From Rebecca billardiae RCC1528 (taxonomy: Eukaryota > Protista > Haptophyta), in NCBI GenBank assembly GCA_965240325.2, contig OZ251237.1:1488001-1552000 (forward strand): DNA of 64,000 nucleotides. Reading direction: 5' to 3'. A model generated the notes under the pieces. It ran no database searches. It was not told the DNA's origin and saw only the letters and a program-made list of their open reading frames with translations. The translations under genes and the position numbers were made by a program. Shown here piece after piece: positions 2,705 to 60,540 of this stretch. Every line of letters begins with the position of its first letter. Position 1 is the first letter of the stretch.

Positions 2705-2705
<1 letters not shown>

Positions 2706-4375
2706 GGCCCGCGGTGCAGGGCGGAGCGCGCAGCGTGGAGCCCGCACCAGCGGGCCCGAACAACGTTTCAAAAAGATCTTTGATCAAGAAAAAAGGGACG
2801 GGGGACGATTTTCATGGCTGGAGGAGACCGAGTTTCGATTTTGAGACGACTCCCTTACAGGTGCATTAGCGTCGAAAAAGGTCGCGCCCACGGCAAGTTC
2901 AGAATAGTAAAGCGTGGAGTGACGCCCGTCCAAAAAACTTCACGCCCTTTAGGATCCCTAACGTAACGAACCGTTACAAGCGATTTTTCCGGCCAATGAG
3001 ATTGCAGCAAGGTCCAAGGAGCGATGACGTATATCACATCTAGATAGAGATTGCCGCGAACCGATGTGACCATACGTACGTCCCTTGAATCAGTTGAATC
3101 AACTATTCAATCGCGCCGTGTCTGTATCAGGAGCCGACGAGGCAAGGGTCAGTAGCCGATGGGCCAACCTCGGCGAATCTCAATACTATCTGACACCGGA
3201 AGCGGTCGCTCGGGAGCCGGGGCGCGCGGCGGCCCGCGTTTTCTACGCCACGGCTGCGGCGAGACCGCGAGAGGATGAGGCGAGCTGACGAGCGACCGAC
3301 GGGTGAGGACGGCGATGGGCAGGTGCGCGCGGCGAGTTGCGCCTGGAGCGCGCGGCTGCGGCGGGTCCCGACTGCCGTCGACATCGCGTTCGTGCCCCCG
3401 CTCACTCCGCGCGCCCCCGCCGCCCCGTGTCGATGCCTGCGCGCGGCCGCGCGCCGGTCGGCGCCCTAGGCGCCCCGGCCGCGCCGCGGCAGCCGCCCTG
3501 TATTCGGGCTCTCGCAAGCTCGGGGGCAGCGGCGCCTGATGCCGGACTGATCGATCTCTGAGTCAGATTCGACTTCACCACGCGCCGCCCTTGCCATGCC
3601 TTTCCGGGGAGCGCCGACGATCCGAGTCCATCGTCGACGGTCTGACTCTGAGCGAGGGCTACGCCTCGGAACTGAACGGTACTCTACGAGGAGGACGAGC
3701 TGCGCGGGCGACGGTGGTGCGTGACGTCCCCAGAGCTGGCTGTGCCTCTGCAACGCGTGCCGAGCCTGATCGAGGTGTGTCAGCCCGTGCACGCGCGGCG
3801 TGCGCGAACGATCCGTGACTGGTGCCCAGTCGCACCTCCGACCTCGGCACCGTGCTCCCTCGGGCTGTCAGCTCCGCGTGGCCTGGCGTGCACGTCGAGT
3901 TGCGCTCATGCGTCGATCACGCCTCGCGCCCGCCTGTCGGCCGTCGCGCAGGCGCTGGTCGAACCCTACTCGGACCAGTGCAAATCACCTAACTATCCTG
4001 GCGCTGCCGCGGTGCGTGGTGACCCGCGGCGGGACAGCGGTCAGTCAGCAGCAGCGGCCCGAACGAATCCGCGGCCCCGCACCGTGCTCCCTGGCTGTCA
4101 GCTTCGCGTGGCCTGGCGTGCACGTGGAGTCGCGCTCATGCGTCGATCACGCCTCGTCGCATCCGCCTGTACACAATCGGCGCCGCGCCGGCGGCTGCGA
4201 AGTGCGCCGATGGGCCCGCGCCCCGGGCGCGGCGGGCGGCGGCGCGCCGCTGGAGTCTAGTTGTACGGGCATGCAACTCCGGGTCTGTCAATAGACGACT
4301 GCGATGGAGGGTGCACCGCCACCGCGGGCCCTGAACTACGTTCGTTCTACGGAAAAGGACCGCGGAACGCGGTCA
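2705..4375 (+). mobile_element. Asymmetric-end element copy E1 (Helitron2/Helentron-like, non-autonomous)
   Basis: Left end TGGCCCGCGGTGCAGGGCGGAGCG... (~145 bp near-identical to E2/E3). Right end has the subterminal inverted copy CACCGCGGGCC (4320-4330) and the terminal hairpin GACCGCG-GAA-CGCGGTC-A. Internal ~80-bp direct repeat at ~3849-3926 / ~4080-4155. Confidence 0.8.
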
Positions 4376-5874
4376 TTTATATTGTGGCTGTGCGCATGCA
4401 CGGAGATATGCGCCGTAAGCGTCTCGGCACTGCTGCTTGCCCTCGTGGCAGTACGACTGCGCGCGGTGGAGGTGATGGTGCAGGTACGGTGCCACGTCTG
4501 TGAGCAGCGCCTGTGGGCAGGCTAGACCGTGAGATCGCCTGTGCCTGTGCGCCTGTGCAGCCGTGCTGTCGCTGCTGGGCAGCATTCGCATCAGCCTGCA
4601 CTCGCCGAGCCCGTCGCCGAGCGCGTCGTGCATCCTCCGAATCACCGCAGCCTCTGCGTGCACCTCCTGTGGCGCGCTCGCCCACAGTGCCTCGAACTTG
4701 CGCGAAAAGTGGCGGTACAGATGGCTGTCCACCGCGTTGAGTGCCAGCACTCGGTGCTGCTGCGATTCGGTAAAGTGCGCAGAGCCCAGGGAGCTGCGGT
4801 TTGACTTTTGGCGCACGCTCGCAAACTCCTCGAGGGCGACTCGGTGCGCGCCAATGCGGTGCCGCAGCAACGCGAGGCCCTCGGGCAGTCGCTCCAGGAC
4901 GAGCACGAGATCCAAGGTACCCTCCAACTCGCGCAGCCAGCGGTGCACACGGGTGTCGTTGTGGTCGTGCCGCGTGAAGCGCGCGTTGTCCTCAAACCGG
5001 TACCAGCCCAGATCGTGCGCCTGGTTGTTGATGAAGCGCACTGCGTCTGCGCGTGTGAAGGGGAGAGCAAGGGGGAGGGGGGCATGTGAGACGGGCGGGA
5101 CACGGCGCCATGCAGCCGGCACCCCTGCATTCCGCGGCGCGCGCACACCGACTTGGCCTTGCGGCAACCGACGCGTGCGCTCCAAGCGTCGCACAAGCCC
5201 TTCCACTGCCGAGCTACCGACTGATGGGTGGTACCAGTCAAGAGCTGAGCCCAGTCGCGACAAAGGCTCGCGCAGGACGGTGAACATGAGCGGCGCGATG
5301 TGGTAACGGGCGTACGCGACCATCGCGGGCGCGTCCAGTACGGCGTGCGATGCGATGATGTCGAACTGGTGCCGCGCGTGCGGGTAGCGCCTGCCCGGGA
5401 AGCTGCGCGGGTAATTGAGCGAGCTCGAGGCCATGGTGCACGGCAGCATCACCGTCAGGTTGCGCCAGTCGGCCATGCGGAGGAGCATGGTCGAGATCGA
5501 CGACGAGCCCGTCTTGTGCGTCTGCGATGCACCAGGGGCACGGTGTGATGGGCGCATACCATGGGAATCTCTGGCCGCAGATTGCCCCCCTCTGGCCGCA
5601 GATCGCACCGACCCACACGCGCGCGGGCGCGCGCGAGCACCTTGAGAAAGATGAGCGGTCGGAATGGGTGCACGGCGAGCTCATCGCGGATATACGCCGG
5701 GAGGAGGAAGCCGTCGATGCCGCCCAGGGGGCCGACGCTCGAGCTAGCGTTGGGCACCTCCAAGCTGCTCTCCACGAGCAGCATGGGCGGCCGACGTCGA
5801 GCCGCTGCAGCGCAGCAACGAGGGTGCGCTCGCCTGCGCGACCTGCTGCGCCTGGTGGCTCGTTCACGGCTCAT
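4373..5874 (-). CDS. Galactose-3-O-sulfotransferase family protein (2 introns)
   Basis: Splicing 5522-5640 restores the 5'-PSB motif IFLK|THKTGSS. Also seen: FTVLREPLSRLGS, INNQAHDLG, LDLVLVLERLPEGLALL and NAVDSHLYRHF, all typical of Gal3ST. Probable second intron ~5047-5148. Start codon uncertain. Confidence 0.85.
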
Positions 5875-6424
5875 CACGCCCGTTCATGCATTCATTAATG
5901 TACAACAGATAGAGTAGTACCCCTACATAGCTACTAGTGTAGTGCCAGTGGTACAGTATACTGTACGGTACTACAATGCTGTACCTCTCACGTCCGATGG
6001 CGGCCACCATGTGCGCGAGCCGCGAGGTACAGCGAAGCAGAATCGTACGCGTACATAGTATAGACGTACGACGATGAAAGATACATTGCCGAGTGGTGAG
6101 TCCGAAGTCTCACCGACACCGCGTGTGACTCGGTGTGTCAGTGAGTTCACTACGGTCAGATCGGTCACGCCCAGTGTTACAGTGTACGGACGCGCGAGCG
6201 GCGTGAGGGCGGACTGCGGCGGACGATGAGGATCGTGATGGCGCTGGCCATCCGAGCACGACGGCGGCAATGCTCGCATGCTTCAAGAATCAAGGGCCAC
6301 GGCACAGCAGTCGGCAGGCAGCATTGGCAGCGCCATCACCTGGGCGGGTGCGGGGGGAGCGGAGCGCTTTGCACCGCCGCCATCGAGCTCGCACCGCGTG
6401 AGGGCACGAGGCTGAGCGCGCTGC

Positions 6425-7845
6425 CTACTCAGCGGCAGCAGCGGCATCGTCGGCCGCTGCCTCCGGCTCTGCCGCGCCTTCGGCTGCGGCCGCGTCGCCG
6501 CTAGCCTCGCCTTCGGCAGCAGCCGTCTCACCGCCCTCCGCAGCAGCGCCAGCCTCGCCCTCCGCCGCAGCGGCGGCGCCGTCGTCGGCAGCTGCTGCGT
6601 CACCACCTTCGGCGGCGGCTCCCTCCGCGGCGGCTCCCTCTGCATCACCACCCTCGGTGGCTGCGGTTGCCGCGCCCTCAGCCGCTGCCGCCTCGCCCTC
6701 AGCGGCCGCCGCCTCGCCCTCCGCCGCTGCCGCCTCGCCCTCCGCCGCTGCCGCCTCGCCTTCCGCAACTGCCGCCTCGCCCTCGGCCGCCGCCGCCTCG
6801 CCCTCGGCCGCCGCCGCCTCGCCCTCGGCCGCCGCTGCTTCGCCCTCGACCGCGGCTGCTTCGCCCTCGATCGCCGCCGCCTCACCCTCCGGGGCGGGTG
6901 CGCCCTCGGCCGCCGGCACACCCGCGCTCTCACCGTCCGCTGCTGCATCAGCGGCGCCCTCCGCGGCCGCCTCCTCCCCGGCAGCGTCGGCGTTCACATC
7001 TGGCTGCGCCGCGACGGGCTCGGGCGCCGGCTCGGGCTTCTTCTCGGCGGCGGGCTCCGCTGCGGCCGCGGTCGCGCCAGCATCAGCCTCCTCCTCCTCC
7101 TCATAAGCTTCGCCCTTCAAGAGCGCCGCGACAGCCTTGTGCCCGCGCTCGGTCGCCTCGTCCACGCACGACTTGCCGTCCTTGTCCACGAGCGACTGGT
7201 CCGCGCCTTTGCTCATCAGCGTCGACACACACTCCTTCTGCCCGCTGTAAGCGGCGTAGTGCAGCGCCGTCAGCCCATCCTGCACGGGGCAGGGCCGCGA
7301 TGGGTTGCGTAGTGACAGCGTGGGGCACGCGACGCGCGGCGTGAGCGGGCAGATGGTGGCGGAGGGCGTGCGCGCGATCGTGGGCTCTGCGTCGCCCCTC
7401 CCCCGTGCACGCACCCGATCCTGCACGTTCACGTTCGCGCCGGCCTCGATCAGAGCCAGCATCGCATCGGTGGATGGCTTGTCCGAGCAATACATCAGCG
7501 GCGTGAAGCCAACCTTGTCTGTGGCATCGACCTGTGCGCCGAGCGTGATGAGGGCCTTGATGGTCTCGGTCTGGCTCTTCCCAGCAGCGACGTGCAGCGC
7601 CGTCCATCCGTGCTGCGGGGCACGCACGGACGTAGCGCGCGAGCAGAGGGCGGGGGCCATCAGCCCCACAATGCATCGGGCGAGTGGGCGGGCGGGTGCG
7701 CGGGGCGATGGCGCACCTTCTCGCTGATGCCGTCCACGGGGATTCCACCCTCTACGAGCTTCTTGCACGTGTCCACATGGCCCAACGACGCGGCGAGCAG
7801 GAGAGGCGCCGGGTCAACAACCTTCTCGGGCGGGGCGTCACCCAT
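6425..7845 (-). CDS. Ankyrin-repeat protein with acidic Ala/Glu-rich repetitive tail (2 introns)
   Basis: Ankyrin motifs GWTALHVAA, GFTPLMYC and GLTALHYAA. GT-AG introns 7613-7716 and 7280-7414. (AEGEAAA)n tail. Confidence 0.9.
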
Positions 7846-8095
7846 GATCTTCGCGTCCCACCCAGCTCGGGGGTGCGAGAAGTAACGGGCCGCGGCGAAA
7901 CAGTTGTTTTCTTATTCGCGGAAAAATCGTCTGCCCCATCAAATCGCGGCAGAGCGGGACAGCTGCGTCCGCGTCCGGCAAGCCGTCCGCGTGGCCTTCC
8001 CACCGCGGCGGCCGCGGAACCAGCTTGGACTGAACCGCTTTCGTCACAAGCTTCACGCACGCGCTCCGCTCTCGCCGCACGCTCCTCGGCGGAAG

Positions 8096-8992
8096 ATGGC
8101 AGGGGAGATTGGGTCTGATGTGGCGCCGCCTTCGCCCTCGCGCAAGCCCACTGACATGAAGTACGAGCACGCCCGCCTGCTCATCCAGGGCAAGACTCCG
8201 CAGGACCTGCTCGCCGATCGGATCCGCAGCGACGGCGCCATCATCGGGAAGACCCTCAAGGTGAATGCCTTCATCAACCACCAGGTGGACTGCCACCTGA
8301 TGAGCGTGTGTGGGCACGAGCTTGCCCGCCGCTTCCGTGGGCTGGAGGTGACCAAGGTGCTCTCATGCCCCGGCAGTGGCGTCATGCCAGCACAGGTACG
8401 CGCGCGTGTGCGCCAGCGCTGGCTGAATGCGGCGCGCCCGCGCGTCGCTGACGCAGGCCCATGCGCGGCGTCGCCGCGCGACCTCGGCAGGCATGCGCTC
8501 TGCACATGAGCATCCCACTCGTCTTCGCCACGGACACCCCACCTCTCGTGCGCCCGGACGGCATTGTGTACGATTCCGAGCTCACGGAGACGAGCCTCCA
8601 GCGCCCCAGCTACAAGCTCCATCTCTCGAGCGAGTTCATTGGCCCGGGGGACCGCTTGCTCATCATCGACGACATGCTCTCCCGCGGCGGCACGGCCAAG
8701 TGCCTCGGCGCGCTCGCTTCCAAGGCGGGCGCCACCGTCGTTGGCGCAGGTGCTGGCCTCGCTTGCGCGGGCGCGTCGCACGGCATGCGCGCTCGCTTCG
8801 CGCGCTGCGCCCGCTCACCCGTGTCACCTGCCGGCCGCCCGACCCTGCGCCGCAGGCTTCATGATCGAGAAGGAGTTTGAGAACGGGCGGCAGGTGGTCT
8901 CCAACTCGCTGCAGCTGCCCGCGCAGCGCGTGCAGTCTCTTGTGCGCATCCGCAGCATCGATAACGGCATCGTAGACTTTGTCGAGTCGTAG
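8096..8992 (+). CDS. xpt: Xanthine phosphoribosyltransferase-like protein (bacterial Xpt type; 2 introns)
   Basis: LKVNAFINHQVD matches the Xpt N-terminal signature. PRPP-binding motif LLIIDDMLSRGGT and GAGFMIEKEFENGR. Introns 8396-8490 and 8750-8855. Confidence 0.8.
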
Positions 8993-9508
8993 GCGATTGC
9001 GTGCGCAATGCCATCGCTGACCCTGGAGTCAGAAAGCGGTGCCAAGAGCCTCGCCCATCCAACGTACCTTCGTGGGGATCAAGCACCGCGGCCTGGACGC
9101 TCTGGAGGCCAGGAGTGTGCTGGGCGTGCGTGCATTATGCGGACTGAACATGCGGCTCACGGCAATAAAATCTGCCAATGATAACCGACTGATCCGGCAT
9201 CCGCCGTTCCGAGTGCGGAGTGGTCTGTTGGGCGGCGCGGGCCTCGGTCGGCCGGTGGCGGCGCTAATGCGGGTGAGTAGTTTAATGTAGTTGCAGAGAC
9301 CCTGTATGATTTATATATATAATAACGCTGATAAGCGTATACCGTCGTATTAACTTTATTACTACTAAGCGCACGCCCGCGGCGTATCGATGCTCACTAT
9401 ACTAGTTACTACACATATGATGCGCTGCATCCGCCTGCATCGCCATCGAGCTCCGACCCCGGCCCCCGGTGTCACTCCCGGAGTCCATTCTTATAATAAT
9501 GTTATTAA

Positions 9509-12500
9509 TGACCGCGTTCCGCGGTCTTTTTCCGTAGAACGAACGTAGTTCGGGGCCCGCGGTGCACCCTCCGTCGGCTGCTGTCTCAGTCTGACATGTG
9601 TAACGACAGTTCGCCTGAGCTGCCACCGCCAACTCAGTCACTGCCGCCCACCGGGCCGGCGGGCCGAGGACTGTCGCCGCGGGCCGCCGCGGGGACTAGC
9701 GGCCGGCGCGCGCGCGCAGGCAGGGCGAGAGGCGCTGGCGCGTCGGCGCGAGCCGGCGCGTGCGCGCGAGCGGGCGCACCTGCTTGAGGTACTCGCCCTG
9801 CGCCATGCGCTCGACGACGGGCCGCTGGTCGCTCGTGCCGGCAGAGCGAGAGCGCGCGCCACTGCTGGCCCCGGCCTGCCGGCTGCGCAGCCTCGCACCG
9901 AGACCGACCGAGCGGAGCTCGGGGCGGTGGAACGAGGCGAGCGGCGTGTCGCGCCTGCCGCCGCGCGTGCGCGCCTGCTCCACCGCGCCGCCGTGCTCGC
10001 CCGCCGCCTCCTCCGCCGCGTCGGCCTCGAAGACGGCGGCTGCCAGCGGCAGGCTGAGCCGCGCGCGACTCACTCACACTGTGAGTCACACCCGCGGTCG
10101 CCTCGACAGCCATCTATCCACAGCTGCTCGAGCTGCTGGAGGGCGCCGCGACGATGGCAGCGCGGGCGCCCAGCGCGTCCGTTGCCGCGTCGCTCAGCTC
10201 GTCGAGCTCGGCGCCGCACTTCGCCAGCTTGGCGCCTAGCGCCTCCGCGTGTCACGTGCTCGTGCACGTCAGCCTGCTGATACTCCGCGGGTAACGCCGC
10301 CGCCCATCGGCACTTCTGGCATCTGCGCGCGCAGCTGCTGCAGCTCGACGGCGGAGTCGTCGCGGCTGGCGGCGAGGGTGCGCACCGCGTCGCCACTGGG
10401 GACACGGCACCCAGGGTCGGAGAAAATCGGCGCGCCTTTTATTTCCGCCTTGCATTTATTCAGCCGCGCGCTGCGCGGCGGACGCGCGCGTCTCGGGCGA
10501 GCGGGCGACGGCGCCGCGCTCCCGTGCGTGTGGACGATCCCGCGAGCGCAGAGCCGGCGAGCTAGGCTGGGCAGTCGTGCTGAAGTGCCATTCGCCGCTT
10601 CGCGCCGCGCATCGCATTCGGCTGTACTTGCCTCGGGCCAGCACTTGTCTGTGCACACCGCCACACGGCCAGCCCGTCGCCCGCGTGCGCCATGCGAGGC
10701 GAGACACACACGGAGCATGCGCTTCCGCGCGGCGAGGCCTACGCTGTACGCACTGCGCTACCTTGCGCCGCCGCGCATGAGCGCGGGTCCGAACAGCTGC
10801 GTTCAGGTGTGCTGATTGCATCATTCATACGAGCCGATTGGTCGAACAAGCGCTCTGGCCCGACGATGACGTTGCAGCGCACGCCATGCTGATATGCGGT
10901 GACGCGGAGCATGTGCGCTCGCGCGGAGTGGCCACACGCGTGACCGCTGTCCAGCTCTGCCCCGGCATTGAACTCCCTGACTCGTGCTCCGACGTCAATC
11001 TTGGCCCGAGCTAGTACGTGCATGTATGCGTGCTGATGCAGAATATACCTGAACGAGGCCCATGATGGCCTGCCTGCGTGTATGTGCCTCCTCGGATGAC
11101 ACGGCGCGTGTATGAATGTGTGTATACTACCTTGTCAAGCAGTAGCTCACGTCTGGACGTTCGTGTCGAACTTGACGGTGCGCATCGTGCACACACGGTC
11201 AGCCTTGATAGACGCACCCGTGCAGCCGGAAGGCAGCATCAGCCTGCCTAAGACGTGAGCATCCAGCCCCGACGCCGCTTCCGGTGCCTGAATGGCGCGC
11301 GCTCCTTTCACGCGGGAATGTGCTCACTACATCACTATCCAGAAGGGCGCATGTCCGTGCTTTGCATGCTCACATGACCCTCGCCGTAGGTCGATGCCAA
11401 CCGCTGCGTGATGCTCGATCATGCCTTTTGACGGCTGTGTGACCCGTGCAGATGCGTATGCCAGGCAGCGTACTGTGACGAGCGATGACGCGTGCATAAA
11501 CTACCTGGACATTGCCCAGTGCAACCAAGTGCCGGACGCCGACGCCGCTGCTCGCGGCACGCGTGCAGTCAGCCGAGGAATGCACACAACTTCCTTGTTG
11601 GTGCGGCGCACGCGATGGCCTGAGGCGCGGCGGATGCAGTGATTCCGAACGGCGAGCGGTGGAACGACGCAAATGGCTGCTCTTCAGCCGCGCTCAACCA
11701 CGCGCACCGCCTTCGCGGGCACGCAACTACCGCAGGAGGGCGCGCAGTCGGCGCCCATCTCGCCCCTCCAGCGCCGCCCAGCGCGCTGTCAAGCGCAGCC
11801 GCCAGCGGCAGAGGTTGGTGGTGCTCTGACGGCATCACCAACATATTCGGAAAAGAAAATCCCCACCCGAAATTCCTGCGCCCAGTGGTTGCCGAGGCCT
11901 GCAGCCCGGTGATCGCCGCGTCGACGCGCGCGGCGATTTCCCCACGCAGCTCCTCGCGCCACGTGGCCGCCGCTCGCGTGCAGGCAGCTGGGCGCCGCTG
12001 CGCGACCCGGAACCGGCGCGCGTTTCACTGATGCTCCTGCTCGTCCTCACGCTGCTGCACCTCCGCGCCGCCGTCGACCGAGTTGAGGAGGAGCTCGCGC
12101 TCAGCGTCGAGGCGCGAGCTCGCGTGCTTGAGCTCGCCCTTCAGCCGCGCGAGCTCCGGGCGCATCCGGCTCATCAGCTGGCTGCCGCGCCGCTCGCTCG
12201 GCGGTCGCTCTGCTCCGGGCGGCGAGCGACGAGCTCGCGTGCTCCGGACTCGGCTCGCCCTTGCGCGCTGCTCGTCGAGTGACGAACGCGCCCGCGGGCA
12301 GGCTGTTGCCCGTCGCCCCCGCCGCGATCTCGCCGCCCCCGCCGCGATCTCGTCGCGCATGCTCCGTGCGCAGCGCGACGCAACTGGTGCGCGCGCTCCG
12401 TGTCTGGCGCGCGCCTAGTAGCGGCAGCGAGGCCTGTTAAGTGACTATGCTTGTTTTACTATGGTCATGTGCTTATTTACTATGGTCACAGTCTACCCAC

Positions 12501-12754
12501 AATTACCCACCCTCGCACACTTGGACGTGGGTTTCGTTGATTCCTCTGACTATCAAAAGAGCGGACGCGCCCATTTCTCGCTGCAATGGATGTCTCTTGC
12601 GGTCTCAAAATTCGAAACTCGGTCTCCTCCAGCCCTGAAAATCGTCCCCGCCCATGGCCCATCCCTTTTTCTTTGATCAAAGATCTTTTTGAAACGTGGT
12701 TAGGGCCCACGGAGCGGGCTCCACGCTGCGCGCTCCGCCCTGCACCGCGGGCCA
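9509..12754 (-). mobile_element. Asymmetric-end element copy E2 (3.2 kb, with decayed coding cargo)
   Basis: Reverse complement of the left end at ~12600-12754. Reverse complement of the right end (TGACCGCGTTCCGCGGTC...GGCCCGCGGTGCACCCTCC) at 9509-9575. Confidence 0.8.
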
Positions 12755-13988: not shown

Positions 13989-14424
13989 TCACCGGCCGCA
14001 CGCCGGGCGCGGTGGCAGTGCGTGGGGCAGTTGCTGAGAAGACTGCGCGAATCCCACGCCGGATGCTGATGCGGCAGCGGCCGGGTCAGGGACGTACCCC
14101 AGCTGTCGGAGAATGCTGTCCACGTCGGTTCGCTTCACAAGAGCGAGCATGCTGCCGAGCGCCTCGTCCTTGGCCGCCATGGTCGCCGATGGGTCGAGCA
14201 CGCGCTCGGCGAGCTCCTGCACGCGCTGCTGATCACGCTCGCTGCGCGCACGGGAGGGGCACGCGCGCGCGCAGGACCGGCCTGAGTGCGCGCACGATGC
14301 GCCCACCACGCCGCCCGCAACCCTGCAAGATCTGGGCGCGCGCCGAGCGGAGGCAGCGGTGGCGAACACGCGCGCACCTGAGGACCCTGCGCAGCGCATC
14401 AAGAGTCTGCGCGTCCTGCCTGCT

Positions 14425-14455
<31 letters not shown>

Positions 14456-16329: not shown

Positions 16330-16587
16330 CGCCTCCGCCGGGACCGTGCGGCCCCCCCGCCGCTGTTCCCTCTGCTGGCGAGCGGCGCCACGGATCGCTG
16401 CCCAAGGACTGCGGCCGAGGCGGCGGCGGAGGTCTGCAGCGGCGCACAGGGAAGCCGCCGCTTGAGCATGTGTCCGGGAGATCGGCGCCTCGGCCGGCTC
16501 GTCGCCGGACTTGAACTTGTGAAAGTCCGACGAGCGAGCGCTGAGAGGGAAGCCGCGTGTCACTGCCACTTCTCGAGCGCGCCCGTA

Positions 16588-19805: not shown

Positions 19806-20083
19806 CGTGGGTTCGGCCCAGCACCGGACTTTCTCAGGTCCTGAACTTGGAGGCTGCAGCTGGCGCTAGCGCATCACGTGGCGGCGGAGCTGCCATCGCG
19901 GAGACAGCGCGGGGCCACTCGCGTATGAGCGAGTCGCTCAAGTCGCGCGACGATCTGCCACCCCAGCACAAAGGGCTCACGGTCCAGCCCGTGTCCACTC
20001 TGTACCCGACCGTCGGCGACTCGCCGTCCGGGCCGTACCGCTCGCCCGAAGCGGGCGCAAAGAGCGCAGAGCAGGAGCGCAAG

Positions 20084-24506: not shown

Positions 24507-24510
<4 letters not shown>

Positions 24511-30423: not shown

Positions 30424-30485
<62 letters not shown>

Positions 30486-30501
30486 TAGATAGATAGATAG
30501 G
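30424..30501. repeat. (TA)n-(GATA)n microsatellite
   Basis: Direct reading. Confidence 0.95.
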
Positions 30502-37716: not shown

Positions 37717-37748
<32 letters not shown>

Positions 37749-46786: not shown

Positions 46787-47119
46787 TCACGGCTGCTGCG
46801 AGGATGCGCCACTCATGAGCGGTGCTTGTTCCCCGGCCGACCGGGGGCTTCGATCCAGAGCGCACCAGGGGCAGAAGCACCAGCCGATGAGCAGCGCGAG
46901 GCCTCCGAGCGACAGCGGCCGCACATGCGCGTATAATCCGACGGCCACCATCATGCAGAACGCGAGCAGCAGCGCGAAGAGGCCAATATTGCGCGTGGTG
47001 AAAGGCGGCACCTTGCGGTGGTGGCGGCTGTACGCAATCAGACGGGGCGGTCGGCGCTCATCGGGGGTCTCCTCCTCCTCGATGACCGGGTCGTGTGCGT
47101 CCTCGTCGTCATGGTCCAT
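46787..47119 (-). CDS. Small two-transmembrane hypothetical protein
   Basis: Hydrophobic segments IGLFALLLAFCMMVAVGLYA and LSLGGLALLIGWCFCPWC. Confidence 0.6.
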   Translation of the reverse strand: MDHDDEDAHDPVIEEEETPDERRPPRLIAYSRHHRKVPPFTTRNIGLFALLLAFCMMVAVGLYAHVRPLSLGGLALLIGWCFCPWCALDRSPRSAGEQAPLMSGASSQQP

Positions 47120-47334
47120 GGCCGTGGCGAGTCCGACGACCGGGCACACGACCGCGCGACCGGCGAGGGCCCACTCGAGCTGCTTGGCGGCCGCCCGGCG
47201 TGTTGGGCCGGACAAAGATGGCGGCGGAAGAGTCCGGAGGAAGGCACTCGAACCGCGCGGCGTCAGGGGTCAACGTCTCAACGACAACGTGCAGGTCAAA
47301 GCCGTCCGGCCAGGGGTGCTGTGCGCTGCACGCG

Positions 47335-48155
47335 ATGGCCTCCTGCGGCCTGACCTTCCCGTTCGAGCTGCACCCCGCGTTTTACTCGGCATACCTGCGC
47401 AGCGACGACCCAGAGGCCGAGTTTGGGATCCCCGTTGTCAAGATTGGACAGGGCTCCGGGGAGAAGGACGACGTTGGCTTCCCCTTCCCCGAGGTGTGCG
47501 TGTGCGCGCGCGCGCATGCTTGAGCGGAGTGCGCGTGCGGCGCCGTGGGCTGAGGGCCGACGCCGCCCTCCCGCGTCGCGCGCGCCTACAGCCCGGCTTC
47601 ATCATCGTCATCGAGCGTCTGTACTGGCGATCGGCCAAGTCGCGCACGCAGCAGCGACGGCGCGAGACGGAGGACGGCTTCTCCTGGCTGAGCTCATCGT
47701 CCACGCGGCCGTCCGTCGTCTCGCTGCCGACCGGCGAGAAGCTCGTGACGGAGTACCTGTACAGGCGGGATCGCAGCCAGGCGACGGACGCGCTGAGTAG
47801 TCTGCAGAAGCACGAGATGTGGCTGCTGCCCGCAGACTACGAGCTGATCGCTCGCGCGCCGCCGGGCGCGCGAGCAAGCCACGCAAACGCCCGGCGGCCG
47901 AGCACGCCGATGCCGGTGCGCTGCTTGGTGCACTACCTGTGCAAGCAGATGGCGACGTGGAAGATGGCCGTCCCGCGCGTCCGCCAGGTGCCGCTNNNNN
48001 NNNNNNNNNNNNNNNNNNNNNNNNNNNNNNNNNNNNNNNNNNNNNNNNNNNNNNNNNNNNNNNNNNNNNNNNNNNNNNNNNNNNNNNNNNNNNNNCCGGC
48101 GCCGGCCGCCGACGAGCCGACTGCTACGATACTAGGGAAAGCTGCGCAGTCGTGA
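47335..48155 (+). CDS. Hypothetical protein interrupted by an assembly gap
   Basis: Exon MASCGLTFPFELHP...FPFPE, a GT-AG intron ~47494-47591, then exon PGFIIVIERLYW... running into the Ns. 3' end unknown. Confidence 0.6.
47996..48095. other. Scaffold gap (100 N)
   Basis: Run of N. Confidence 1.
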
Positions 48156-49550
48156 GACGGCGGCCGTGTTGTCAGCCTGGCCAGCGGCGCAAACCGCCGC
48201 CTTGTGCCCACGCGCGGCCCCGCCAGCGGCCGTCCCACCGGCCGCTGCCGACGAGCTCGCATGCCCTGGCTCGGGCGTGCCGCCGCCTAATCGGCCCGCC
48301 ATCGCAGCAGCTGCGCCGCCGCCGTTGGACGCGCCATGGCTCCCGTAGGCGCCAGGGTACCCCGCCAGCGTCTTGAGCTCGACGCGCGAGCCGACGGACT
48401 GCGCCACCGCGTCCTGCACCGCATGTTGCCGCGCCGCGTCCACGCGCGCGCGCGCCGTGTGCAGCAGCGAGGTGAGGCTGAAGTAGTACTTGGCAAAGAC
48501 GCTCGAGCGCACGTGCAGGTTGTACTGCAGCGCCTCGCAGAAGAACGCCTCGAGCTCGTTGATATCCACCAGGTTCCAGTCCGGGAACGCCTCGGTCAGG
48601 TCGACGTTCCACACCAGCTCGTCGTACAGCAGCTTGGCGGCCGCGAGCAGCCCGGCGAGCAGCATCCGCCTCCAGGTGTCGGGCTGCAGCGGCCAGGCGT
48701 TGAGGTCCATCACGCGCTCCATGTAGATGAGCGTCATCACCAGGATCGACACGTCGATGTCCAGCCGCCGGTGCAGGCTCGCCACGAACACGTACACCGT
48801 CGTCACGCCCGGCGTCGCGTCGAGCGCCTCCTTGGCCGTGTCCGCCTCCAGCGGCCGCAGCCGCTCCGAAAACCGGTCGTACTTCTGCGGGCGGAACTGC
48901 GCGGGGCGGCGCTCGGACGCGCGCATGTGCGTGTGCAGCGCGATCGCAATCCCGCGGAGCACCGCCTCCGTCTCGGGCGAGTGCCAGATATCCAGCCCGG
49001 GCAGCTTGGAGATCACGCTCGTGCTCACGTGCCGATTGCTGATGGCCGGCACGGCGCCGCCCTTGCGCGACGCGCCGGGTGCGTCCTTCGCCGGCGTGGG
49101 GACGGTGGGGACGGACAAGGTCGACGACGAGCGCGGAGCCTCCACCGACGCGCATGCGGACGGCAGCGAGCTCGACGGCGGCGACATCGACTCGCTGCTC
49201 GGCGCGCTGACAAAGGATGGCTGCTCGCTCTCAAGCTCGGGCACAGGCGCGGGCTGCTGGCTTGGCAGCTCAGTGAAGGCAGGGCTGTTGATGGCCGCCT
49301 GGCTGAAGCGCGCGCTGAAGGGAAAAGGCGCCGACGTCGAGCGGCGGTGCCCCCGCTCCCGATCCCGGCCGGAAGGGTCGAGCCCCTCGAGGTACATCGC
49401 GTCGGTCAGGCACCGCCGCCTTCCAGCAGGCTTCCTCCACCTGCCACTGCCGACGCGCGGCCGCTGCACTGTCATTGGCAAGGGTGCGGCCGCGGGAATT
49501 TCCTTCAGCGCCAGCGGCGGGAGGCACGCGTGTCCCTTGGCGCGCGTCAT
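48132..49550 (-). CDS. CCNY: Cyclin Y-like protein
   Basis: FSERLRPL, TLIYMER, WRRMLLAGLLAAAKLLYDELVWNVD and INELE...LQYNLHVRSSVFAKYYFSL match the cyclin Y box. Start and 3' end uncertain. Confidence 0.85.
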   Translation of the reverse strand: MTRAKGHACLPPLALKEIPAAAPLPMTVQRPRVGSGRWRKPAGRRRCLTDAMYLEGLDPSGRDRERGHRRSTSAPFPFSARFSQAAINSPAFTELPSQQPAPVPELESEQPSFVSAPSSESMSPPSSSLPSACASVEAPRSSSTLSVPTVPTPAKDAPGASRKGGAVPAISNRHVSTSVISKLPGLDIWHSPETEAVLRGIAIALHTHMRASERRPAQFRPQKYDRFSERLRPLEADTAKEALDATPGVTTVYVFVASLHRRLDIDVSILVMTLIYMERVMDLNAWPLQPDTWRRMLLAGLLAAAKLLYDELVWNVDLTEAFPDWNLVDINELEAFFCEALQYNLHVRSSVFAKYYFSLTSLLHTARARVDAARQHAVQDAVAQSVGSRVELKTLAGYPGAYGSHGASNGGGAAAAMAGRLGGGTPEPGHASSSAAAGGTAAGGAARGHKAAVCAAGQADNTAAVSRLRSFP

Positions 49551-49604
49551 CGTGGCCGCGACCGTACATATCCGGCTGATTGCTGCTGCATCGGCCGTGA
49601 CACG

Positions 49605-50309
49605 ATGAGGCACTCGCTCGTGCTCATGGCGTCGCTGGTCGGCGTGGGGGAGGCGTTCCACGCGCCCTCGTCGGCGCTGGCCGGCCGCGCAGCCCTCGCG
49701 CGCTCGGCCCTTGCGCCAGCCGCGCACAGCTGCTCGATGGAAGTGAAGCAGCCGCGGCGAGACGAGAAGGGCTACATCATCCCAGACGATCTCGACTTCG
49801 ATCTGCGCGCGGGTGTGTCGAAAGAGCTGGGGGCGTCGAAGCTGAAGGAGGTGCCACCGCCAATCGAGGAGCTGCTCGAGAAGGCGCGCTCGGCGCCCGA
49901 CTCGCTCATGTTCGCCGAGACCATCGACGCGATCGACAAGGCGTTCGAGTTCTTTGGCACGCGCTTTGTGAACGGCGCGGTCGAGTCAAAGGACACGGAG
50001 AACCAGGGCTCGTCGAAGGTGCTCTCGCTCGCGAAGCTGTTCGACCTGCCGACAGACGTGGTGCTGTCGCTCTTTGGCGAGCACTACCGCGCGGTCAAGC
50101 AGGATCCGAGCGGCTCCGACCACGCCAACATCCGCGCGCTGATGCAGACTGGGGTGGAGGCCGTCACATTCCCCAACGGGCTGAGCCTCACGCCGCGCAA
50201 GGGCTCGTGGGACGGGACGAAGTACTCGAGCGACAGCGGGCTCGCTGAGTCGGCGACCGTCCAGGGAGAGGCTGAGTGGGATGTCGAGTCGGACATCTGG
50301 ATCCCGTGA
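49605..50309 (+). CDS. HopJ type III effector-family protein, predicted plastid-targeted
   Basis: FAETIDAID, FVNGAVES...ENQGSSKVLS, LSLFGEHYRAV..DPSGSDHANIRALMQTG. The leader GEA-FHAP resembles the ASA-FAP complex-plastid motif. Confidence 0.85.
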   Translation: MRHSLVLMASLVGVGEAFHAPSSALAGRAALARSALAPAAHSCSMEVKQPRRDEKGYIIPDDLDFDLRAGVSKELGASKLKEVPPPIEELLEKARSAPDSLMFAETIDAIDKAFEFFGTRFVNGAVESKDTENQGSSKVLSLAKLFDLPTDVVLSLFGEHYRAVKQDPSGSDHANIRALMQTGVEAVTFPNGLSLTPRKGSWDGTKYSSDSGLAESATVQGEAEWDVESDIWIP

Positions 50310-50601
50310 GCACCGGGCGAAGAGGGTACCGCCAACTCGGCGGACCCGCCGGACCGCGTGCCGCCGCGCGATCCGCTGCTGATTCGCGTCAGCCGACAGG
50401 CGACAGACAGGGCCAGACAGGCTCCGACACGAGCGGTGATGTCACGGATGCTAGTGATACCGGCACCTACGTCATCTCAATAACGAATATTTATTTTATA
50501 ATATGATTAAAGTCTGCTGAGCCTGATGCCACACTCAATCCCGGATTGTCGATCATAAGTATATATATTATATATATATGACGATCACGATATATATATA
50601 A

Positions 50602-50607
<6 letters not shown>

Positions 50608-50676
<69 letters not shown>
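50608..50676. repeat. (TA)n microsatellite
   Basis: Direct reading. Confidence 0.97.
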
Positions 50677-50679
<3 letters not shown>

Positions 50680-53818: not shown

Positions 53819-54187
53819 CCCCTGATTGGCCCCCCACGTCCCAACGTGCGTGACCTCGCTGTGCAGAGTGCGCTGGGGCCCCGAATCAGACTCCGGAAAA
53901 CCCCTGACGAATAAACCGGCCTCTGAAAAAGCTTTGACGATTTTCCTGCGCTGCACACGCCTGCTTGCACCTCGGCCGACGCCGAGGCGTGCTGCTGGTG
54001 GTATCCGCGGCAGCGGTCGGGGTTGGCCAGCCGCGGCTTGTTGGAGGTGTGCGGCCGTCGCCCGTTCGCGCGCTTCGGGCTCGCGGCGTGCCGAGCGCGA
54101 CCGCCTAGCTCGGTACGCGCGTGCGCTCACCCGCCTCCACGCCCGCGCCACGCGGTGCCAGGCGCGCAGCGCGAGGCCGCCGTCAGC

Positions 54188-57100
54188 ATGGGGTCCCTGT
54201 TCCAGTCGGCGCACATGAAGCTCGTGCAGATCATCGACCGCAACGACGCGGCGCGCGCGGTGATCTCCGAGCTGGGCGAGCACGGCATCTTCCAATTCCG
54301 CGACATGAACAGCGGCCTGCAGTTCTTCAAGCGCACGTTCAGCGACGACGTGCGCCGGTGCGACGACATCCAGCGCCGGCTGCTGAAGCTGAAGAAGCAG
54401 CTGGACGCCGTGCAGCTGCTCACGCACCCGCGGCACGAGGAGGGCCTGCGCGTGCCGCTCCCCGAGCTCGACGCGCAGATCTCCACGCACGAGGCGGAGC
54501 TCAAGGAGCTCTCGACCAACGTGAACGCGCTGCGGCGCAACCACAACTCCCTGCGCGAGCAGAAGCTGGTGCTCGAGGTGTGCAACTCGCTGTACGCGGG
54601 CACGGTGGGCTCGGCGGCGGCGCCCGAGGCGGCGTCGGGCAGCCGCTTCGCCCCCGCCTCGACCGACCCGATCAGCCCGCCCGAGACGCCCTCCGTGCTC
54701 TCCTCGCTCGTGCAGAACGAGTTCTCGAGCTCGGCGGACGACGGCATGCTGCAGTACATCGTCGGGATGATCCCGCGCGCGAAAGCGCACACGTTCGAGC
54801 GGGTGGTGTTCCGCACGACGCGCGGGAACTGCATGGTGCACAACGTCCCCGTCGACGACGACGACCTGCTCGACGCGTCCGACCACAAGGGCGAGGCCGT
54901 CGCGCTCAAAAACGTGTTTCTGATCTTTTTCTCTGGCGGTGTGCTCAAGCAGAAGCTGGGCAAGATCTGCAACTTCTTCGGCTGCCAGCGGTACTCGCTG
55001 CCCGAGGTGCGCGCCGCCGCCGCGCAACCGCCGCGCGCGCGCCTGCCTGCCCTGCTCCCGCCTGCCTGCGCGCGCTCACACGTGCTCGCGCGGCGCCCGC
55101 GCCCGCGCCCGCGCCCGTGTGCGCGCGCCCGCGCCGCGCAGACGGCGGAGATGCGGCGCGCGCTGCTGGCCGAGGTGACGGCGCAGCTGAGCTCGTCGAC
55201 CACGGTGCTCGACCGCGCGCTGCAGCTGCAGCGCGTCTGCCTCGACAACGTGGCGCACCACTGGGCCGAGTGGAACTACACGACGCTGCGAGAGAAGATG
55301 ACTTTCAACGGTGCGCGAGGCGCGGCGCGGCGCCGGGCGCGGCGCGGTGCAGTGTGCAGTGCAGCGCAGTGCACGCGCGGGCTGCGGCTGCGCTGCGGAG
55401 CGGCCGCCGGCCCGCTGCGCGCGGCTGCGGCGCGCAGCACGCCCCCGGCCGCCGCCCGGTCGCGGCCGGAGCCGGCGGGCGTCTGCGGCGCGGCAGTGGG
55501 CACGCTGGAGCGACTGTGGCGCGGCTGGCGGATCTGGCGCGCGCCTGCGCGCGGCCGCCGCTTGGGCGGAGCCGTCGTGCGGCGGCGAGGCGCGGCTGGG
55601 CGCGCTCGGTTGCTGCGCGCGCGCGCGGCGGCGGCCGGCTGACGCGCACGCCCCTCCGCCCGTCCGCGCGCCCTCTCTGTCGCGCGCGCACACGCCGGCC
55701 GCGCACACTGCGCCGCGCGCGCGCAGCGCTCAACATGTGCAACTTCGACATCCGGCGGAGAGTGTTCATCGCCGAGGGGTGGATCGCCGTGTCCGACGAG
55801 CCCAAGCTGCAGGAGGCGCTCGCGGCCGCGTCGCGCAAGTCGGGCGGCGAGACCTCGCCCATCCTGAACACGATCTCGACGGGCCTGACGCCGCCCACCT
55901 ACCTGCCGGTCGGCAAGCTCACCAAGGGCTTCCAGGCGCTGGTCGACACGTACGGCGTGCCCAAGTACCGCGAGGTGAACCCCGGCGTGTTCGCGGTGAT
56001 CCTCTTCCCGTTCCTCTTCGGCATCATGTTCGGCGACGTGGGCCACGGCTTTCTGCTCGCGCTCTTCGGCGGCGTGATGATCGCGTTCGAGGAGCGGATC
56101 GGCAAGCAGCGGCTCGACGACATTGGCGAGATGTGCTTTGGCGGCCGTTACATCCTGCTGCTCAACGGCCTGTTCGCCATGTTCGTGGGCACGCTGTACA
56201 ACGAGTGCTTCGCGGTGCCGATGGACCTGTTCGGCAGCCGCGCGCTCCAGGCGCAGGACGACCCGTCGGTCGGCGTGTACCCGTGGGGCATCGACCCGAT
56301 CTGGCACCACGCGGAGAACAAGATCGCCTTCTTCAACTCGTACAAGATGAAGCTCTCGATCGTGGTGGGCGTGCTGCACATGGCGCTGGGCATCTGCCTC
56401 TCGCTCGTGAACCACCTCGAGTTCAAGTCGCCCGTCTCGATCGTCTTCGAGTTCGTGCCCGAGGTCGTGTTCTTCACGTGCATCTTCGGCTACCTCGTCT
56501 TCATGATCTTCCTCAAGTGGTCGGTGCCGTGGCCGAACGGGGACCCTCCGATGCTGCTCAACGTGCTGATCGGCATGTTCATGAGCCCGGGCACGCTCAA
56601 GGAGACGCCGCTCTTCGAGCACCAGGCGAGCGTGCAGCTGCTGCTGCTCGGCTTTGCGCTGCTCTCGGTGCCGCTGCTGCTGCTGCCCAAGCCCATCATC
56701 CGCTACTACCAGCACAAGGCGCAGGCGCGCGCGGCGACCGCGAGCAACTACACGATGATGGCGCGCGAGTCGGGCGCCGCGCACGAGACCAACCCGATCG
56801 CGCCGTCCGCGCCGCCGCCCGGGGGCGCGGAGGAGGAGGAGGAGGAGTACAGCTTCACCGACGAGTTTGTGCACCAGGTGCGCGCAGGGCGTGCAGGGCG
56901 TGCAGTGCGCCCTCAGGGCGCAGGGCGCACCAGCACAAGCGCACGCAAGCGCGCGCGCGCGGGAGCGGTGGGTCTGCGCGGGCCGCGCGCGCGAGCGTGA
57001 GAGAGGCGGGATGGGCAGCGAGCGCGCTGCCGGGCGGAGGGGCGCGCGCGCCGCGCACCGTGGCTGCGCCCGCGCGTGGGCCCGCGCGTGGGCCCGCCGC

Positions 57101-57805
57101 CGAGCAGTCGCGCCCTCTCGCGCGCGCGCGCCCGCCCGCGACGCCCCGCGCACCGCGCCGACCGTCCGCGCGCCCGCCCCGCCCGCCCGCCCGCCCCGCC
57201 CGCCCGCCCGCCCCGCCCGCCCGCCCGCCGGCCCGCCCGCCCGCTTGCGCTTGCGCTTGCGCTGTGCGCTCGCAGGTGATCCACACCATCGAGTTCGTGC
57301 TCGGCTCGATCTCGAACACCGCGTCGTACCTGCGGCTGTGGGCGCTCTCGCTCGCACACTCGCAGCTCTCCGAGCTCTTCTGGGAGAAGGTGATGGTGGG
57401 GTTTGCGCTGGCGAACAACGGGCAGCCGCAGAGCATCCTGGTGAGCGCGCGCGCGCCGCGCGGGGTGCGCGGGCGCGCGCGGCACGGCCCGCCCGCTGCC
57501 GCCGTCCGCGCCGTGCTCGCCGCGCGCGCCGGCTGCTGAGAGCGTGCTCGACCCTGGCGCCGCCGCCCGCGCCGCCCCCGCCTCAGGTGAGCTGGGTGCA
57601 GCCGTTCGTCTTCACCTTTGTCTGGGCGATGCTCTCCCTCGCCGTGCTGATGTGCATGGAGAACCTCTCCTCCTTCCTGCACGCGCTGCGGCTGCAGTGG
57701 GTCGAGTTCCAGAACAAGTTCTACGCGGGCAGCGGGCAGGCGTTTGTGCCGTTCGCGTACTCGACCATTGACGAGTTTGCGTTCGAGGAGGCGCCGCCGT
57801 TCTGA
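54188..57805 (+). CDS. VPH1: V-type H+-ATPase V0 subunit a (4 introns)
   Basis: [24 protein letters not shown]...[64 protein letters not shown] and [16 protein letters not shown]. Introns 55007-55141, 55311-55726, 56878-57275 and 57441-57586. Confidence 0.97.
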
Positions 57806-58171
57806 GCGGCCGAGACGAGACGGCCGTCAGGGGTGCGCGGACGAGTTTGACTGGCGGCTCCGCCATATGCTGGGCCGTTTGCGACCGAGCAACGGTTGTC
57901 GTCGTGACACGGCTGGCATCATCGCGCCGGCGAGCGCGCCAGGGCCCAGGGCAGCGATGATGGTCACTACTCGGTGACCAGTGTCCAGTCTCCGCGACGG
58001 TTCGTTCTTCGGTCAGTCGGTCAGCTCGGTCTCCATAGTCCATTCACGGACCATGGCCATTGGAGCTCGCGTGACGCGCGACGCCGCAGCGGCGGGTAGC
58101 GGCCGCAGGTACGAGTCGGTACGTGATAATAATTAGTACGTAATTACGCATTTGGTTAGTATATTATATAT

Positions 58172-58964
58172 GTGGCGTTATAACGGAGTTATAACCGAGT
58201 GTGTCGGGAGGCTGGAAAGGCAACGCGCAGCTGGTGGACAAGGGCCGCCATCGTCTTCTAGGTCCTGCAGGTAGTTGCAGTCGATTTCCGGAGCTCATCG
58301 GCCACGGAGCTATCCTTTATCATATCATCATGGCGGGCGCTGGTCCTTTCATATCGGCCAACCACACTGGCTCCTCTGTAAGTACCCGCTCCTCTCCACT
58401 ATCCGGCGCTCGAGATCATATCCAAGGTCATCTTAAGTCGGCGTGGCAACTTACCAAAGTTCATATCAAGCAGCCCACCTAGCAGAGCTCGCTCGATCAT
58501 CGGTTACACGACCTTTCGGGCCGAGCTGCTCATCTCTCGGCAGCCCCTGCTTCGGCCTGCGCATTTGCAAAGCCCGAGGTCCCGCCATCTCCTCTGCGTT
58601 CTTTGCTTGTGCTCGTTGCGAAACCCGCCATCCGCCCCTGCAGCCTCCGTTGTGGTTGACAACCTTGTCGTCAGGCCTGTGAGTGCTGCGCTTGCCTGAG
58701 CTGCTGCCACACGCTGGCGCAGTCTGCGCGCAGCTTTGGCACCGTCGGCTCGGCAGTCGCTCTTCCCGTTCAGCCAGGGACAAATCCCCACCACGCGCAA
58801 GTATATATATTTATACATCACCATTTCGGCATGGTGTGTATCGGCATTTGCTGCATGCTCGCATATATGCTGCAATACCTGCCCTCGCATGCACATCACG
58901 CAGACTGTGGGTGATGTTCGTCCATACTCAATGGCGTCGCGTCGCTCTTCATGCAGGAGGACAC
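58172..58964 (+). mobile_element. Diverged relative of the 1035-2614 element
   Basis: TATATAT-GTGGCGTTATAACGGAGTTATAACCGAGTGT start. Possible end GGACAC-ATATATAT; the right boundary is inferred. Confidence 0.5.
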
Positions 58965-59141
58965 ATATATATATTATCGTCAATATAATAGAGAGAGATC
59001 GAGACGCTAGAGTCACTACTCACTAGAGAGTAGTAGAGAGACTCCTACTAGTCCTACTAGACTTACTAAGACTCAAAGAGAGAGAGCAAGAGTCAGAGAC
59101 CGAGAGAGCAGAGACGGAAAGACGAGCAGAGAGTATACTCA

Positions 59142-60540
59142 TGGCCCGCGGTGCAGGGCGGAGCGCGCAGCGTGGAGCCCGCACCAGCGGGCCCGAACCA
59201 CGTTTCAAAAAGATCTTTGATCAAGAAAAAGGGACGGGGGGCGGCGGAAAAAACGGGACGGGGGGCGATTTTTAGGGCTGGCGGAGACCGAGTTTCGAGT
59301 TTTTGAGATCGCATAGAGAGGTCTATTAGGCCGAAAAAGAGCGCGCCCAGCTGATTCCATAAGTAATCGATGGACGGGACGTGAGCCTGGCCGTGACATT
59401 AGTGTAACGCTTCGTTACGAGCGAATCGTACTCGTCTTCCCGGATCGCGTGACGTCCGGACTGGGCCACATCCGGATCGTCGGAGGTGACGTGCCCCGGG
59501 CCCCGGCACCACGATGGGCGATGGCGGATATGCGGGACGGCGCCTGCACGTGCCTCCGGACCCGCCTCCCGCTTGCTGCTCACGCAGTCAGCTGCGACCG
59601 TGGCGCATGATCGCAGAAGCAGTGCCGGCAGTACGGCCTGCATCAGCTAGTGCCGCGCCGTCGTGGCGCGCGCGGTACGGTTGCGCGTTTGCAGCGCTCG
59701 CCGCTCGGCGACGGCACGCGCGTGCGGCTCAGGTGTGTCAAATGCGGTCTCGTCGGCGCGCTTTCGCCTGCCACCTCGTGCACCCGTGCCGCCAGTTTCA
59801 TCGTCTTCATGAGGACTGCTGCTGCTGTCGCCATCCGCTCTCCATCACCCCGAGTCGCCGGTCGCGCGGCGCGCGCGGTAGGCACTAGGCAGGGCGTGGC
59901 GGTCACTCACCCGTGCAACGGGTCAAGTGGCCAGAGTACGTCTGGTCGTTGGCTGGCACGGGCCGCAGCGCTAAAGCACCCTGCTGTCACACCCGACTCC
60001 TTCAGTACTCCGAGCTCCGCGGCACGACTCACTCGGCACGATCGCGGACGGGTCGGATCCGAGCTGATCAGCCAGAGTTGGACACAGTTTGGCAGCTACT
60101 AGTACTAGTAGTAATTCCGATGCCGATGGCACGATCGCGGACGGGTCGGATCCGAGCTGATCAGCCAGTTGGACATTTGGCAGCTAGTTGTCAGACGGAC
60201 GTCCGATTTGACGACCGGTGCCGGCCGGGTGCGGTCTTGGTTGGGGGCTGGCCAGGGTAGGGCTGGAGGCTTCGGCCGCCAGCCTGATCACCCGGAGCCC
60301 GTTATAAAGGGGAATAATTTAAGGTCTCAGGTCCGCTGCTGTGATTGTGTGAAGTGTGAATGAGTCTCGCGGTCGCGCAGGCAGGGCGACGGTCGGACTA
60401 ATATAGCTTCAGTCATCTCAGAACCGACTTCAACTGGCGAACTGCCACTACGGCGGAGAGCCGCGATTGCACGGCCACCGCGGGCCCCCAACTGGCAACT
60501 GCGTTGATTCTATGCAGAAAAGGACCGCGGAACGCGGTCA
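59142..60540 (+). mobile_element. Asymmetric-end element copy E3
   Basis: Left end 59142-~59310 matches E1/E2. Right end has CACCGCGGGCC (60477-60487) and GACCGCG-GAA-CGCGGTC-A ending at 60540. Internal ~45-bp direct repeat at ~60035 / ~60128. Confidence 0.8.

Follow-up and report, generated by a model that had tools for sequence, protein, structure and literature searches.

Helitron2 transposons carry short asymmetric terminal inverted repeats. The 5' copy, at 0-2 bp from the end, folds with bases further downstream into a 5' hairpin, while the 3' copy is subterminal and immediately upstream of a 3' hairpin, and their first base is usually T (PMC3627910). Their non-autonomous families have about 200 bp of the 5' end and about 50 bp of the 3' end in common with their partners, and in Chlamydomonas the 3' repeat is located 20-30 nt from the end and insertion takes place after TTTT (PMC3627910). 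In the HELIANO paper, the canonical plan of HLE2 has inverted repeats of 12-16 nt, the right one followed by a stem-loop, and an insertion site between T and T (PMC11417382). Related features have been reported for the Helentron-derived HINEs, which possess a 3' palindrome and subterminal inverted repeats (subTIRs) of 12-15 bp at distances of 2-4 nt (5' end) and 38-60 bp (3' end) (PMC4067079), and for Helitron2 elements of Fusarium, which insert after TNAT (PMC5148889). Here, we analyzed a 64-kb stretch of the genome of the haptophyte Rebecca billardiae RCC1528 (contig OZ251237.1, positions 1,488,001 to 1,552,000; hereafter the window), which contains three elements named E1, E2 and E3. Very probably, they are non-autonomous members of one Helitron2/Helentron-type (HLE2) family and represent three subfamilies that have their end signals in common and differ in their non-coding interiors.

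Paired ends, inverted repeats and hairpins

End motifs and conserved blocks were counted on both strands of the window. The left-terminal 41-nt motif was detected three times (at 2705+, 12754- and 59142+; 0 expected in shuffles), and so was the right-terminal 19-nt motif (at 4358-4376+, 9508-9526- and 60523-60541+; 0.07 expected). Downstream of every left end, a right end is present on the same strand, 1.67, 3.25 and 1.40 kb away in E1, E2 and E3, respectively. Two more conserved left-end blocks and the hairpin core were each found three times and only within the copies; the blocks of the type listed for E1 in Table 1 are invariant in all three copies and absent from the rest of the window. 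Considering that the end motifs and left-end blocks each occur three times and are all paired, there are no solo ends in the window. In pairwise blastn comparisons of the three elements (word size 7, E<1e-3), alignments were limited to 143-208 nt at the left end (78-87% identity) and 57-75 nt at the right end (77-88% identity), and the interiors had no match to one another. The left end common to the elements measures 145-205 bp and can be aligned over about 185-205 nt, and the common right end measures 66-75 bp, which resembles the extent of end sharing reported between non-autonomous and autonomous Helitron2 (PMC3627910). The earlier note, made by reading the sequence, had claimed that left ends are always paired with right ends in the correct orientation around interiors that do not align; both claims were borne out within the window, where three left and three right ends form three pairs and none stands alone.

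Table 1. Positions of the three elements and of their terminal features in the window
Feature	Position	Strand	Description	Basis
E1, probable non-autonomous Helitron2-type element	2705..4375	+	1671 bp, written T...A	end motifs
E2, probable non-autonomous Helitron2-type element	9509..12754	-	3246 bp, written T...A	end motifs
E3, probable non-autonomous Helitron2-type element	59142..60540	+	1399 bp, written T...A	end motifs
E1 conserved left-end blocks	2763..2838	+	25-nt invariant block with palindromes AAAGATCTTT, TTGATCAA, then GGAGACCGAGTTTCGA	
E1 5' hairpin	2706..2756	+	outer 5' arm GGCCCGCGGTGC(A); -24.8 kcal/mol, z -4.5, 0/200 shuffles equal	DNA fold
E2 5' hairpin	12704..12753	-	-21.5 kcal/mol, z -2.8	DNA fold
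E3 5' hairpin	59143..59193	+	-24.8 kcal/mol, z -4.2	DNA fold
E1 subterminal 3' inverted repeat	4320..4330	+	CACCGCGGGCC; exact reverse complement of 2706-2716	
E2 subterminal 3' inverted repeat	9554..9566	-	13 nt, TGCACCGCGGGCC	motif search, alignment
E3 subterminal 3' inverted repeat	60476..60486	+		motif search
E1 3' terminal hairpin	4358..4374	+	7-bp stem, GAA loop, then terminal A	motif search, fold
E2 3' terminal hairpin	9510..9526	-		motif search, fold
E3 3' terminal hairpin	60523..60539	+		motif search, fold

The 5' inverted repeat, GGCCCGCGGTGC(A), begins 1 nt in from the 5' T of each element. Its right copy is the exact reverse complement of the 5' copy over 11 nt in E1 and E3 and over 13 nt in E2, and ends 45 (E1), 45 (E2) and 54 (E3) nt before the 3' end, in agreement with the previous description of an inverted copy of the left terminus 45-55 bp inside the right end. 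The 11-mer CACCGCGGGCC has six exact occurrences in the 64 kb, namely three at the 5' ends (as the reverse complement) and three at the subterminal 3' positions. In all three copies, the 5' repeat constitutes the outer arm of a 5' stem-loop of 50-51 nt. Alignment revealed that the inner (3') arm of this hairpin in E2 has two substitutions and lacks the bulged A, with the outer (5') arm unaltered; since the changes are confined to the inner arm, the variation is one-sided and not compensatory. At the opposite end, the 3' hairpin GACCGCG-GAA-CGCGGTC, which had already been read as a perfect terminal hairpin following the right repeat, is present in all copies; its perfect 7-bp stem lies 27-36 nt beyond the right repeat and ends 1 nt from the terminus.

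These features correspond closely to the Helitron2/HLE2 definition. The repeat falls within the size and placement given there (8-16 nt, left copy 0-2 nt from the 5' end, right copy subterminal), the 5' hairpin includes the 5' inverted repeat in three of the three copies, the 3' hairpin is in place, and the elements form a multicopy family whose alignment breaks exactly at the termini, as judged from the three copies in the window and from sequences that diverge at position 59141 in a public sequencing run (run X2, see below). The earlier note had considered the ends as HUH/rolling-circle ends of the Helitron2/Helentron group, which is retained here, and had added that they "do not fit any one class neatly". 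The latter is not supported, because the ends, the inverted repeat and the two hairpins match every HLE2 feature that is testable in the window, and all of the features appear in the published Helitron2/HLE2 definition. Whether the family belongs to Helitron2 in the strict sense or to Helentron depends on the protein of the autonomous partner, expected to be a Y2 Rep fused to a Pif1-type helicase, which has an endonuclease domain in Helentron and lacks it in Helitron2. Canonical Helitrons (Helitron1/HLE1), which start with TC, end in CTRR, possess one 3' hairpin at 10-12 nt from the end and lack terminal inverted repeats, were rejected: the ends here are TGGCCC.../...GGTCA, and the inverted repeat, the 5' hairpin and a 3' hairpin ending 1 nt from the terminus also rule out this group.

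Similar ends might also have been shaped by a different HUH enzyme, that is, by a Replitron (with a Y1 Rep that lacks a helicase) or by an undescribed Rep transposon resembling Helitron2 at its ends. Replitrons are eukaryotic HUH-mobilised elements that are probably present in haptophytes, and they have a right-end hairpin, as do the elements studied here, and insert in an orientation-specific manner (Craig 2023, PMC10288648). However, their hallmark, besides the helicase-less Y1 Rep, is a short direct repeat at both termini (e.g., a 6-bp motif) and not an asymmetric inverted repeat (PMC10288648). Such repeats are absent from our elements, in which the two termini have nothing more than AT (in E3 alone, TCAT) as a direct repeat, and membership in the Replitrons was rejected on this ground. 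In addition, the geometry of an inverted repeat combined with two hairpins is specific to HLE2, and mobilisation by another HUH enzyme appears quite improbable to us.

Junctions and insertion sites

The junctions of all three copies read ...T(T/C)A-T-GGCCC...GGTC-A-T(T/A)..., with TTAT, TTAT and TCAT as left flanks, which is the arrangement previously written as T(T/C)AT^GGCCC...GGTC^AT (the caret marks the boundary). The 50-nt flanks of the three copies have an A+T content of 56-74%, compared with 33% for the whole window. These junction sequences fit a 2-bp AT duplication as well as they fit insertion at T^T or at A^T. The empty site would be identical whether AT was duplicated or a T...A element entered between A and T, and it would have one extra T under the T^T reading; therefore, an empty site cannot separate the former two and can only exclude T^T. 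Target duplications of TA or of 3-bp TWA (mariner or Harbinger type) were rejected, as the flanks do not fit them.

The AT flanks bear on a further alternative, in which the three copies are non-autonomous cut-and-paste (DDE) elements, ISL2EU-like or other, with a 2-bp AT target duplication and very short terminal inverted repeats. Every copy can indeed be written as AT^GGCCC...GGTC^AT, and the extreme ends show a weak gapped inverted match of about 7/9 nt (GGCCCGCG versus GACCGCG, the reverse complement of the last bases). This gapped match is all that a comparison of the first and last 15 nt yielded, which falls short of the matching repeats at the extreme termini expected of DDE/ISL2EU elements. 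Moreover, the conserved ends are strongly asymmetric (about 200 versus about 70 bp) and lack extended terminal inverted repeats; a clean inverted copy exists only in subterminal position on the right (45-54 nt internal), and a 5' hairpin together with a 3' hairpin represents the HLE2 plan. We thus consider a DDE origin of the elements highly improbable.

Next to E1, an open reading frame (ORF) on the minus strand (4373-5608) encodes a homologue of galactose-3-O-sulfotransferase (Pfam E 9e-24), and its TGA stop codon is the reverse complement of the terminal TCA of E1. Because this stop is supplied by the element, E1 abuts the 3' end of that gene model. A search for an empty E1 site by means of the sulfotransferase protein identified two Logan contigs carrying the gene, both of which stop 20-22 nt inside the 3' end of E1, indicating that E1 is present there too; the gene called on both contigs uses the same TGA stop. 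If the site is reconstructed according to the A^T or AT reading, the sulfotransferase ORF would end with TAA at the codon of the present TGA, while under T^T it would continue into a (TA)n tract, which may be taken as a weak hint in favour of A^T or AT. Long (TA)n tracts at 2615-2702, 30424-30499 and 50560-50676 mark AT-rich islands in a window that is otherwise 67% GC, and both E1 and copies of the GTGGCG family lie directly against such tracts. This arrangement suggests that (TA)n-marked AT-rich islands are preferred landing sites.

In all three copies, the flanking A and the initial TG of the element also make up an ATG (at 2704, 12755 and 59141). The ORF that it opens runs through the conserved left end for 44-89 codons, and its first 14 residues are identical among the copies. 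When the protein alignment of the three copies was used as query, no database protein matched, and the ATG at the element start is probably a coincidence.

A possible course of transposition can be drawn from the published Helitron2 model, to which this locus adds the observed ends, their pairing, the hairpins and the absence of coding capacity. A RepHel transposase encoded elsewhere in the genome would nick one (top) strand at the 5' junction ...T-Y-A^T-GGCCC, and its helicase would unwind the nicked strand from 5' to 3'. Termination at ...GGTCA^T would be marked by the 3' stem-loop and possibly aided by pairing of the 5' repeat with its subterminal 3' copy; a role of such pairing in termination has been proposed by Bao & Jurka (PMC3627910). 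The released strand would then be circularised and inserted in fixed orientation at T-Y-A^T in AT-rich islands, with no true target duplication. Differences between interiors could arise via the usual Helitron routes, including internal deletion of a parent, bypass of the 3' end and capture of filler sequence.

A bolder proposal, which we regard as rather doubtful, concerns the 3' junction itself. If GG-TCA-T reproduces the target T-Y-A-T, each insertion would create a new preferred 3' site and could drive exact head-to-tail stacking of unrelated subfamilies; a single tetranucleotide rule would then serve both termination and target choice, as in IS608, and HLE2 ends would be combined with an A-T (Helitron1-like) site. 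IS200/IS605 elements are prokaryotic, use a Y1 transposase and have a target that resembles their own right-end cleavage site, to which TYAT and TCAT may be compared here. They also have hairpins at both ends; in contrast to our elements, these hairpins are subterminal and not accompanied by an asymmetric inverted repeat, and the elements are much smaller.

Interiors, further copies and neighbouring sequences

We found no credible ORF, no Pfam domain and no ORF matching RepHel domains in E1, E2 or E3. The ORFs of E1 and E3, as translated from GC-rich DNA, are rich in Arg/Ala and matched no Pfam family even at E = 1, and these two elements show no codon-position GC periodicity, their maximal spread between codon positions being 0.13-0.15, compared with a mean spread of 0.27-0.45 in six gene or large-ORF stretches of the same window used as controls. 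E2 contains two exon-like patches on its own strand (11908-12357 and 9658-10107, minus), with a GC content at third codon positions of 0.85-0.88. Neither patch has a Pfam domain, and no homologue of the patch at 9658-10107 was detected in a word index of 5.8 billion proteins. The sole HMMER hit of the patch at 11908-12357, to an unrelated protein with 11 tandem repeats whose matches add up to a weak 25 bits, was rejected as spurious. The third-position GC bias of both patches resembles that of coding exons of the same genome, and they may be fragments of a lineage-specific gene. As no Pfam or homologue signal was obtained, and no periodicity signal in E1 and E3, there is no evidence of a recognisable gene in any interior. 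E1 has an internal direct repeat of 64-94 bp (3847-3937 and 4079-4170), no central microsatellite was seen inside the three elements, and no Rfam family was found in the whole window at the gathering threshold.

These results agree with the earlier view that the elements are non-autonomous, which is backed by the missing ORFs and Pfam domains and by the lack of codon periodicity in E1 and E3. The description of the family as a cargo-swapping vector was overstated, given that sharing of the ends only is normal among non-autonomous Helitrons, that the interiors contain no recognisable gene and that the interior of E3 is itself repeated (see below). Different interiors with common end signals are the ordinary pattern for such elements and do not define a new class. 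It is possible, albeit on balance doubtful, that nothing was captured and that the interiors derive from non-overlapping parts of a single long autonomous parent. Deletion derivatives are a common origin of non-autonomous Helitrons and HINEs (PMC4067079), and the interiors are without identifiable host-gene content. Nothing speaks directly against such an origin, since untranslated parts of a parent would also lack periodicity and RepHel ORFs. It concerns the interiors only and is compatible with the Helitron2-type assignment of the ends.

Parts of the E3 region were found in only two public runs, X1 and X2. In X1, a marine-sediment metagenome, pieces of the E3 interior are present and its flanks are not. 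Run X2 consists of contigs only, and its word depth, which is not copy number and was used qualitatively, amounts to 0-5 in the unique flanks of E3, 34-76 in the E3 interior and 164 in the first 170 nt (summed contigs); the near-invariant 5' end is therefore common to more sequences than the E3 interior. Compared with E3, the contigs have 0-1 substitutions but differ by indels (deletions of 10, 6 and 7 nt and a 98-nt skip), and hence they represent other copies. Four contigs diverge exactly at 59141 into differing upstream sequences, which, along with an element depth far above that of the flanks, implies more copies at other sites. The E3 interior thus probably represents a multicopy subfamily and not a unique piece of captured DNA. 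When JGI metagenome contigs were scanned for exact patterns (the 5' 36-mer, and the right repeat plus hairpin), 0 loci were obtained, and viral contigs had 0 matches to the 5' end, to the 3' end or to the conserved 25-mer.

A second repeat family is located at 58172-58964; it starts with GTGGCGTTAT..., has a palindromic 5' motif and is bordered by (TA)n on both sides. Its contig depth in run X2 is about 10-20, and in two contigs the end of the repeat (58964) is followed directly by its start (58172), which indicates tandem or circular copies. A related 5' end and an inverted copy occur next to E1, at 1035-1058 and about 1916-1940. With regard to genes, Pfam searches of nine large ORFs in the window gave meaningful matches for five of them (NIF/BRCT, HopJ, V-ATPase subunit a, galactose-3-O-sulfotransferase and ankyrin domains) and none for the remaining four. 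The HopJ-family domain (PF08888, E 7e-29) is located in the C-terminal part of a large ORF at 48336-50306 (+), just past an assembly gap (47996-48095). This gap interrupts an ORF at 46815-48155; it touches none of the three elements, being 11 kb away from E3 and 35 kb away from E2, and is irrelevant to them.

Weighing the assignment against described systems

Several observations weigh against assigning the family to Helitron2/HLE2. No RepHel domain was found in the nine large ORFs of the window scanned with Pfam, and no RepHel accompanied by these ends was seen. No empty site was found, either for E3 in public runs or for E1 via the neighbouring gene, and AT flanks both sides of every copy; likewise, no read-through joint across E3 was found in public runs, so no absence allele was seen. 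The further copies come from a run whose contig depth has only qualitative meaning. With respect to geometry, the 3' repeat is more internal in these elements (45-54 nt from the end) than in Chlamydomonas Helitron2 (20-30 nt), and the 3' hairpin is 1 nt from the terminus versus a palindrome 8-35 bp from the 3' end in HINEs.

The family provides curated Helitron2-type ends (left and right terminal sequences, LTS and RTS) for a GC-rich haptophyte alga, and our literature search found no description of Helitron termini in haptophytes. Such ends could seed genome-wide annotation and help to find the autonomous partner, and could prevent these repeats from being taken for genes or for a novel class of elements. 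Considering that the elements reside in AT-rich islands beside gene ends, as in the case of E1 and the sulfotransferase ORF, they may affect 3' untranslated regions or gene models. The family leaves the current understanding of transposon mechanisms unchanged.

Among described systems, Helitron2 (Bao & Jurka 2013) is similar in its asymmetric repeats, 5' hairpin, 3' hairpin after the 3' copy, first base T and sharing of the ends only. The Chlamydomonas elements insert after TTTT, in contrast to T(T/C)A(T) here, and their host is a green alga and not a haptophyte; a search for the end motifs in the supplementary sequence files of Bao & Jurka gave 0 matches. HINE/DINE-1 elements (Thomas et al. 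2014, PMC4067079) are alike in subTIR placement, in a short inverted repeat nested in the 5' subTIR, in the 3' palindrome and in T-rich targets, and their non-autonomous copies outnumber the partners; they differ in the variable T runs at their termini, none of which is found in E1, E2 or E3. By description, FoHeli1 and FoHeli2 of Fusarium oxysporum (Chellapan et al. 2016, PMC5148889) share asymmetric repeats, hairpins at both ends and the occurrence of GAA loops, have their 3' repeat at a similar distance from the end (38-51 bp) and insert after TNAT, which the left flanks TTAT, TTAT and TCAT fit here, whereas they end in ATTTT and the characterised FoHeli copies are autonomous. The departures of the Rebecca billardiae elements from the published Helitron2/HINE geometry are differences of degree only.

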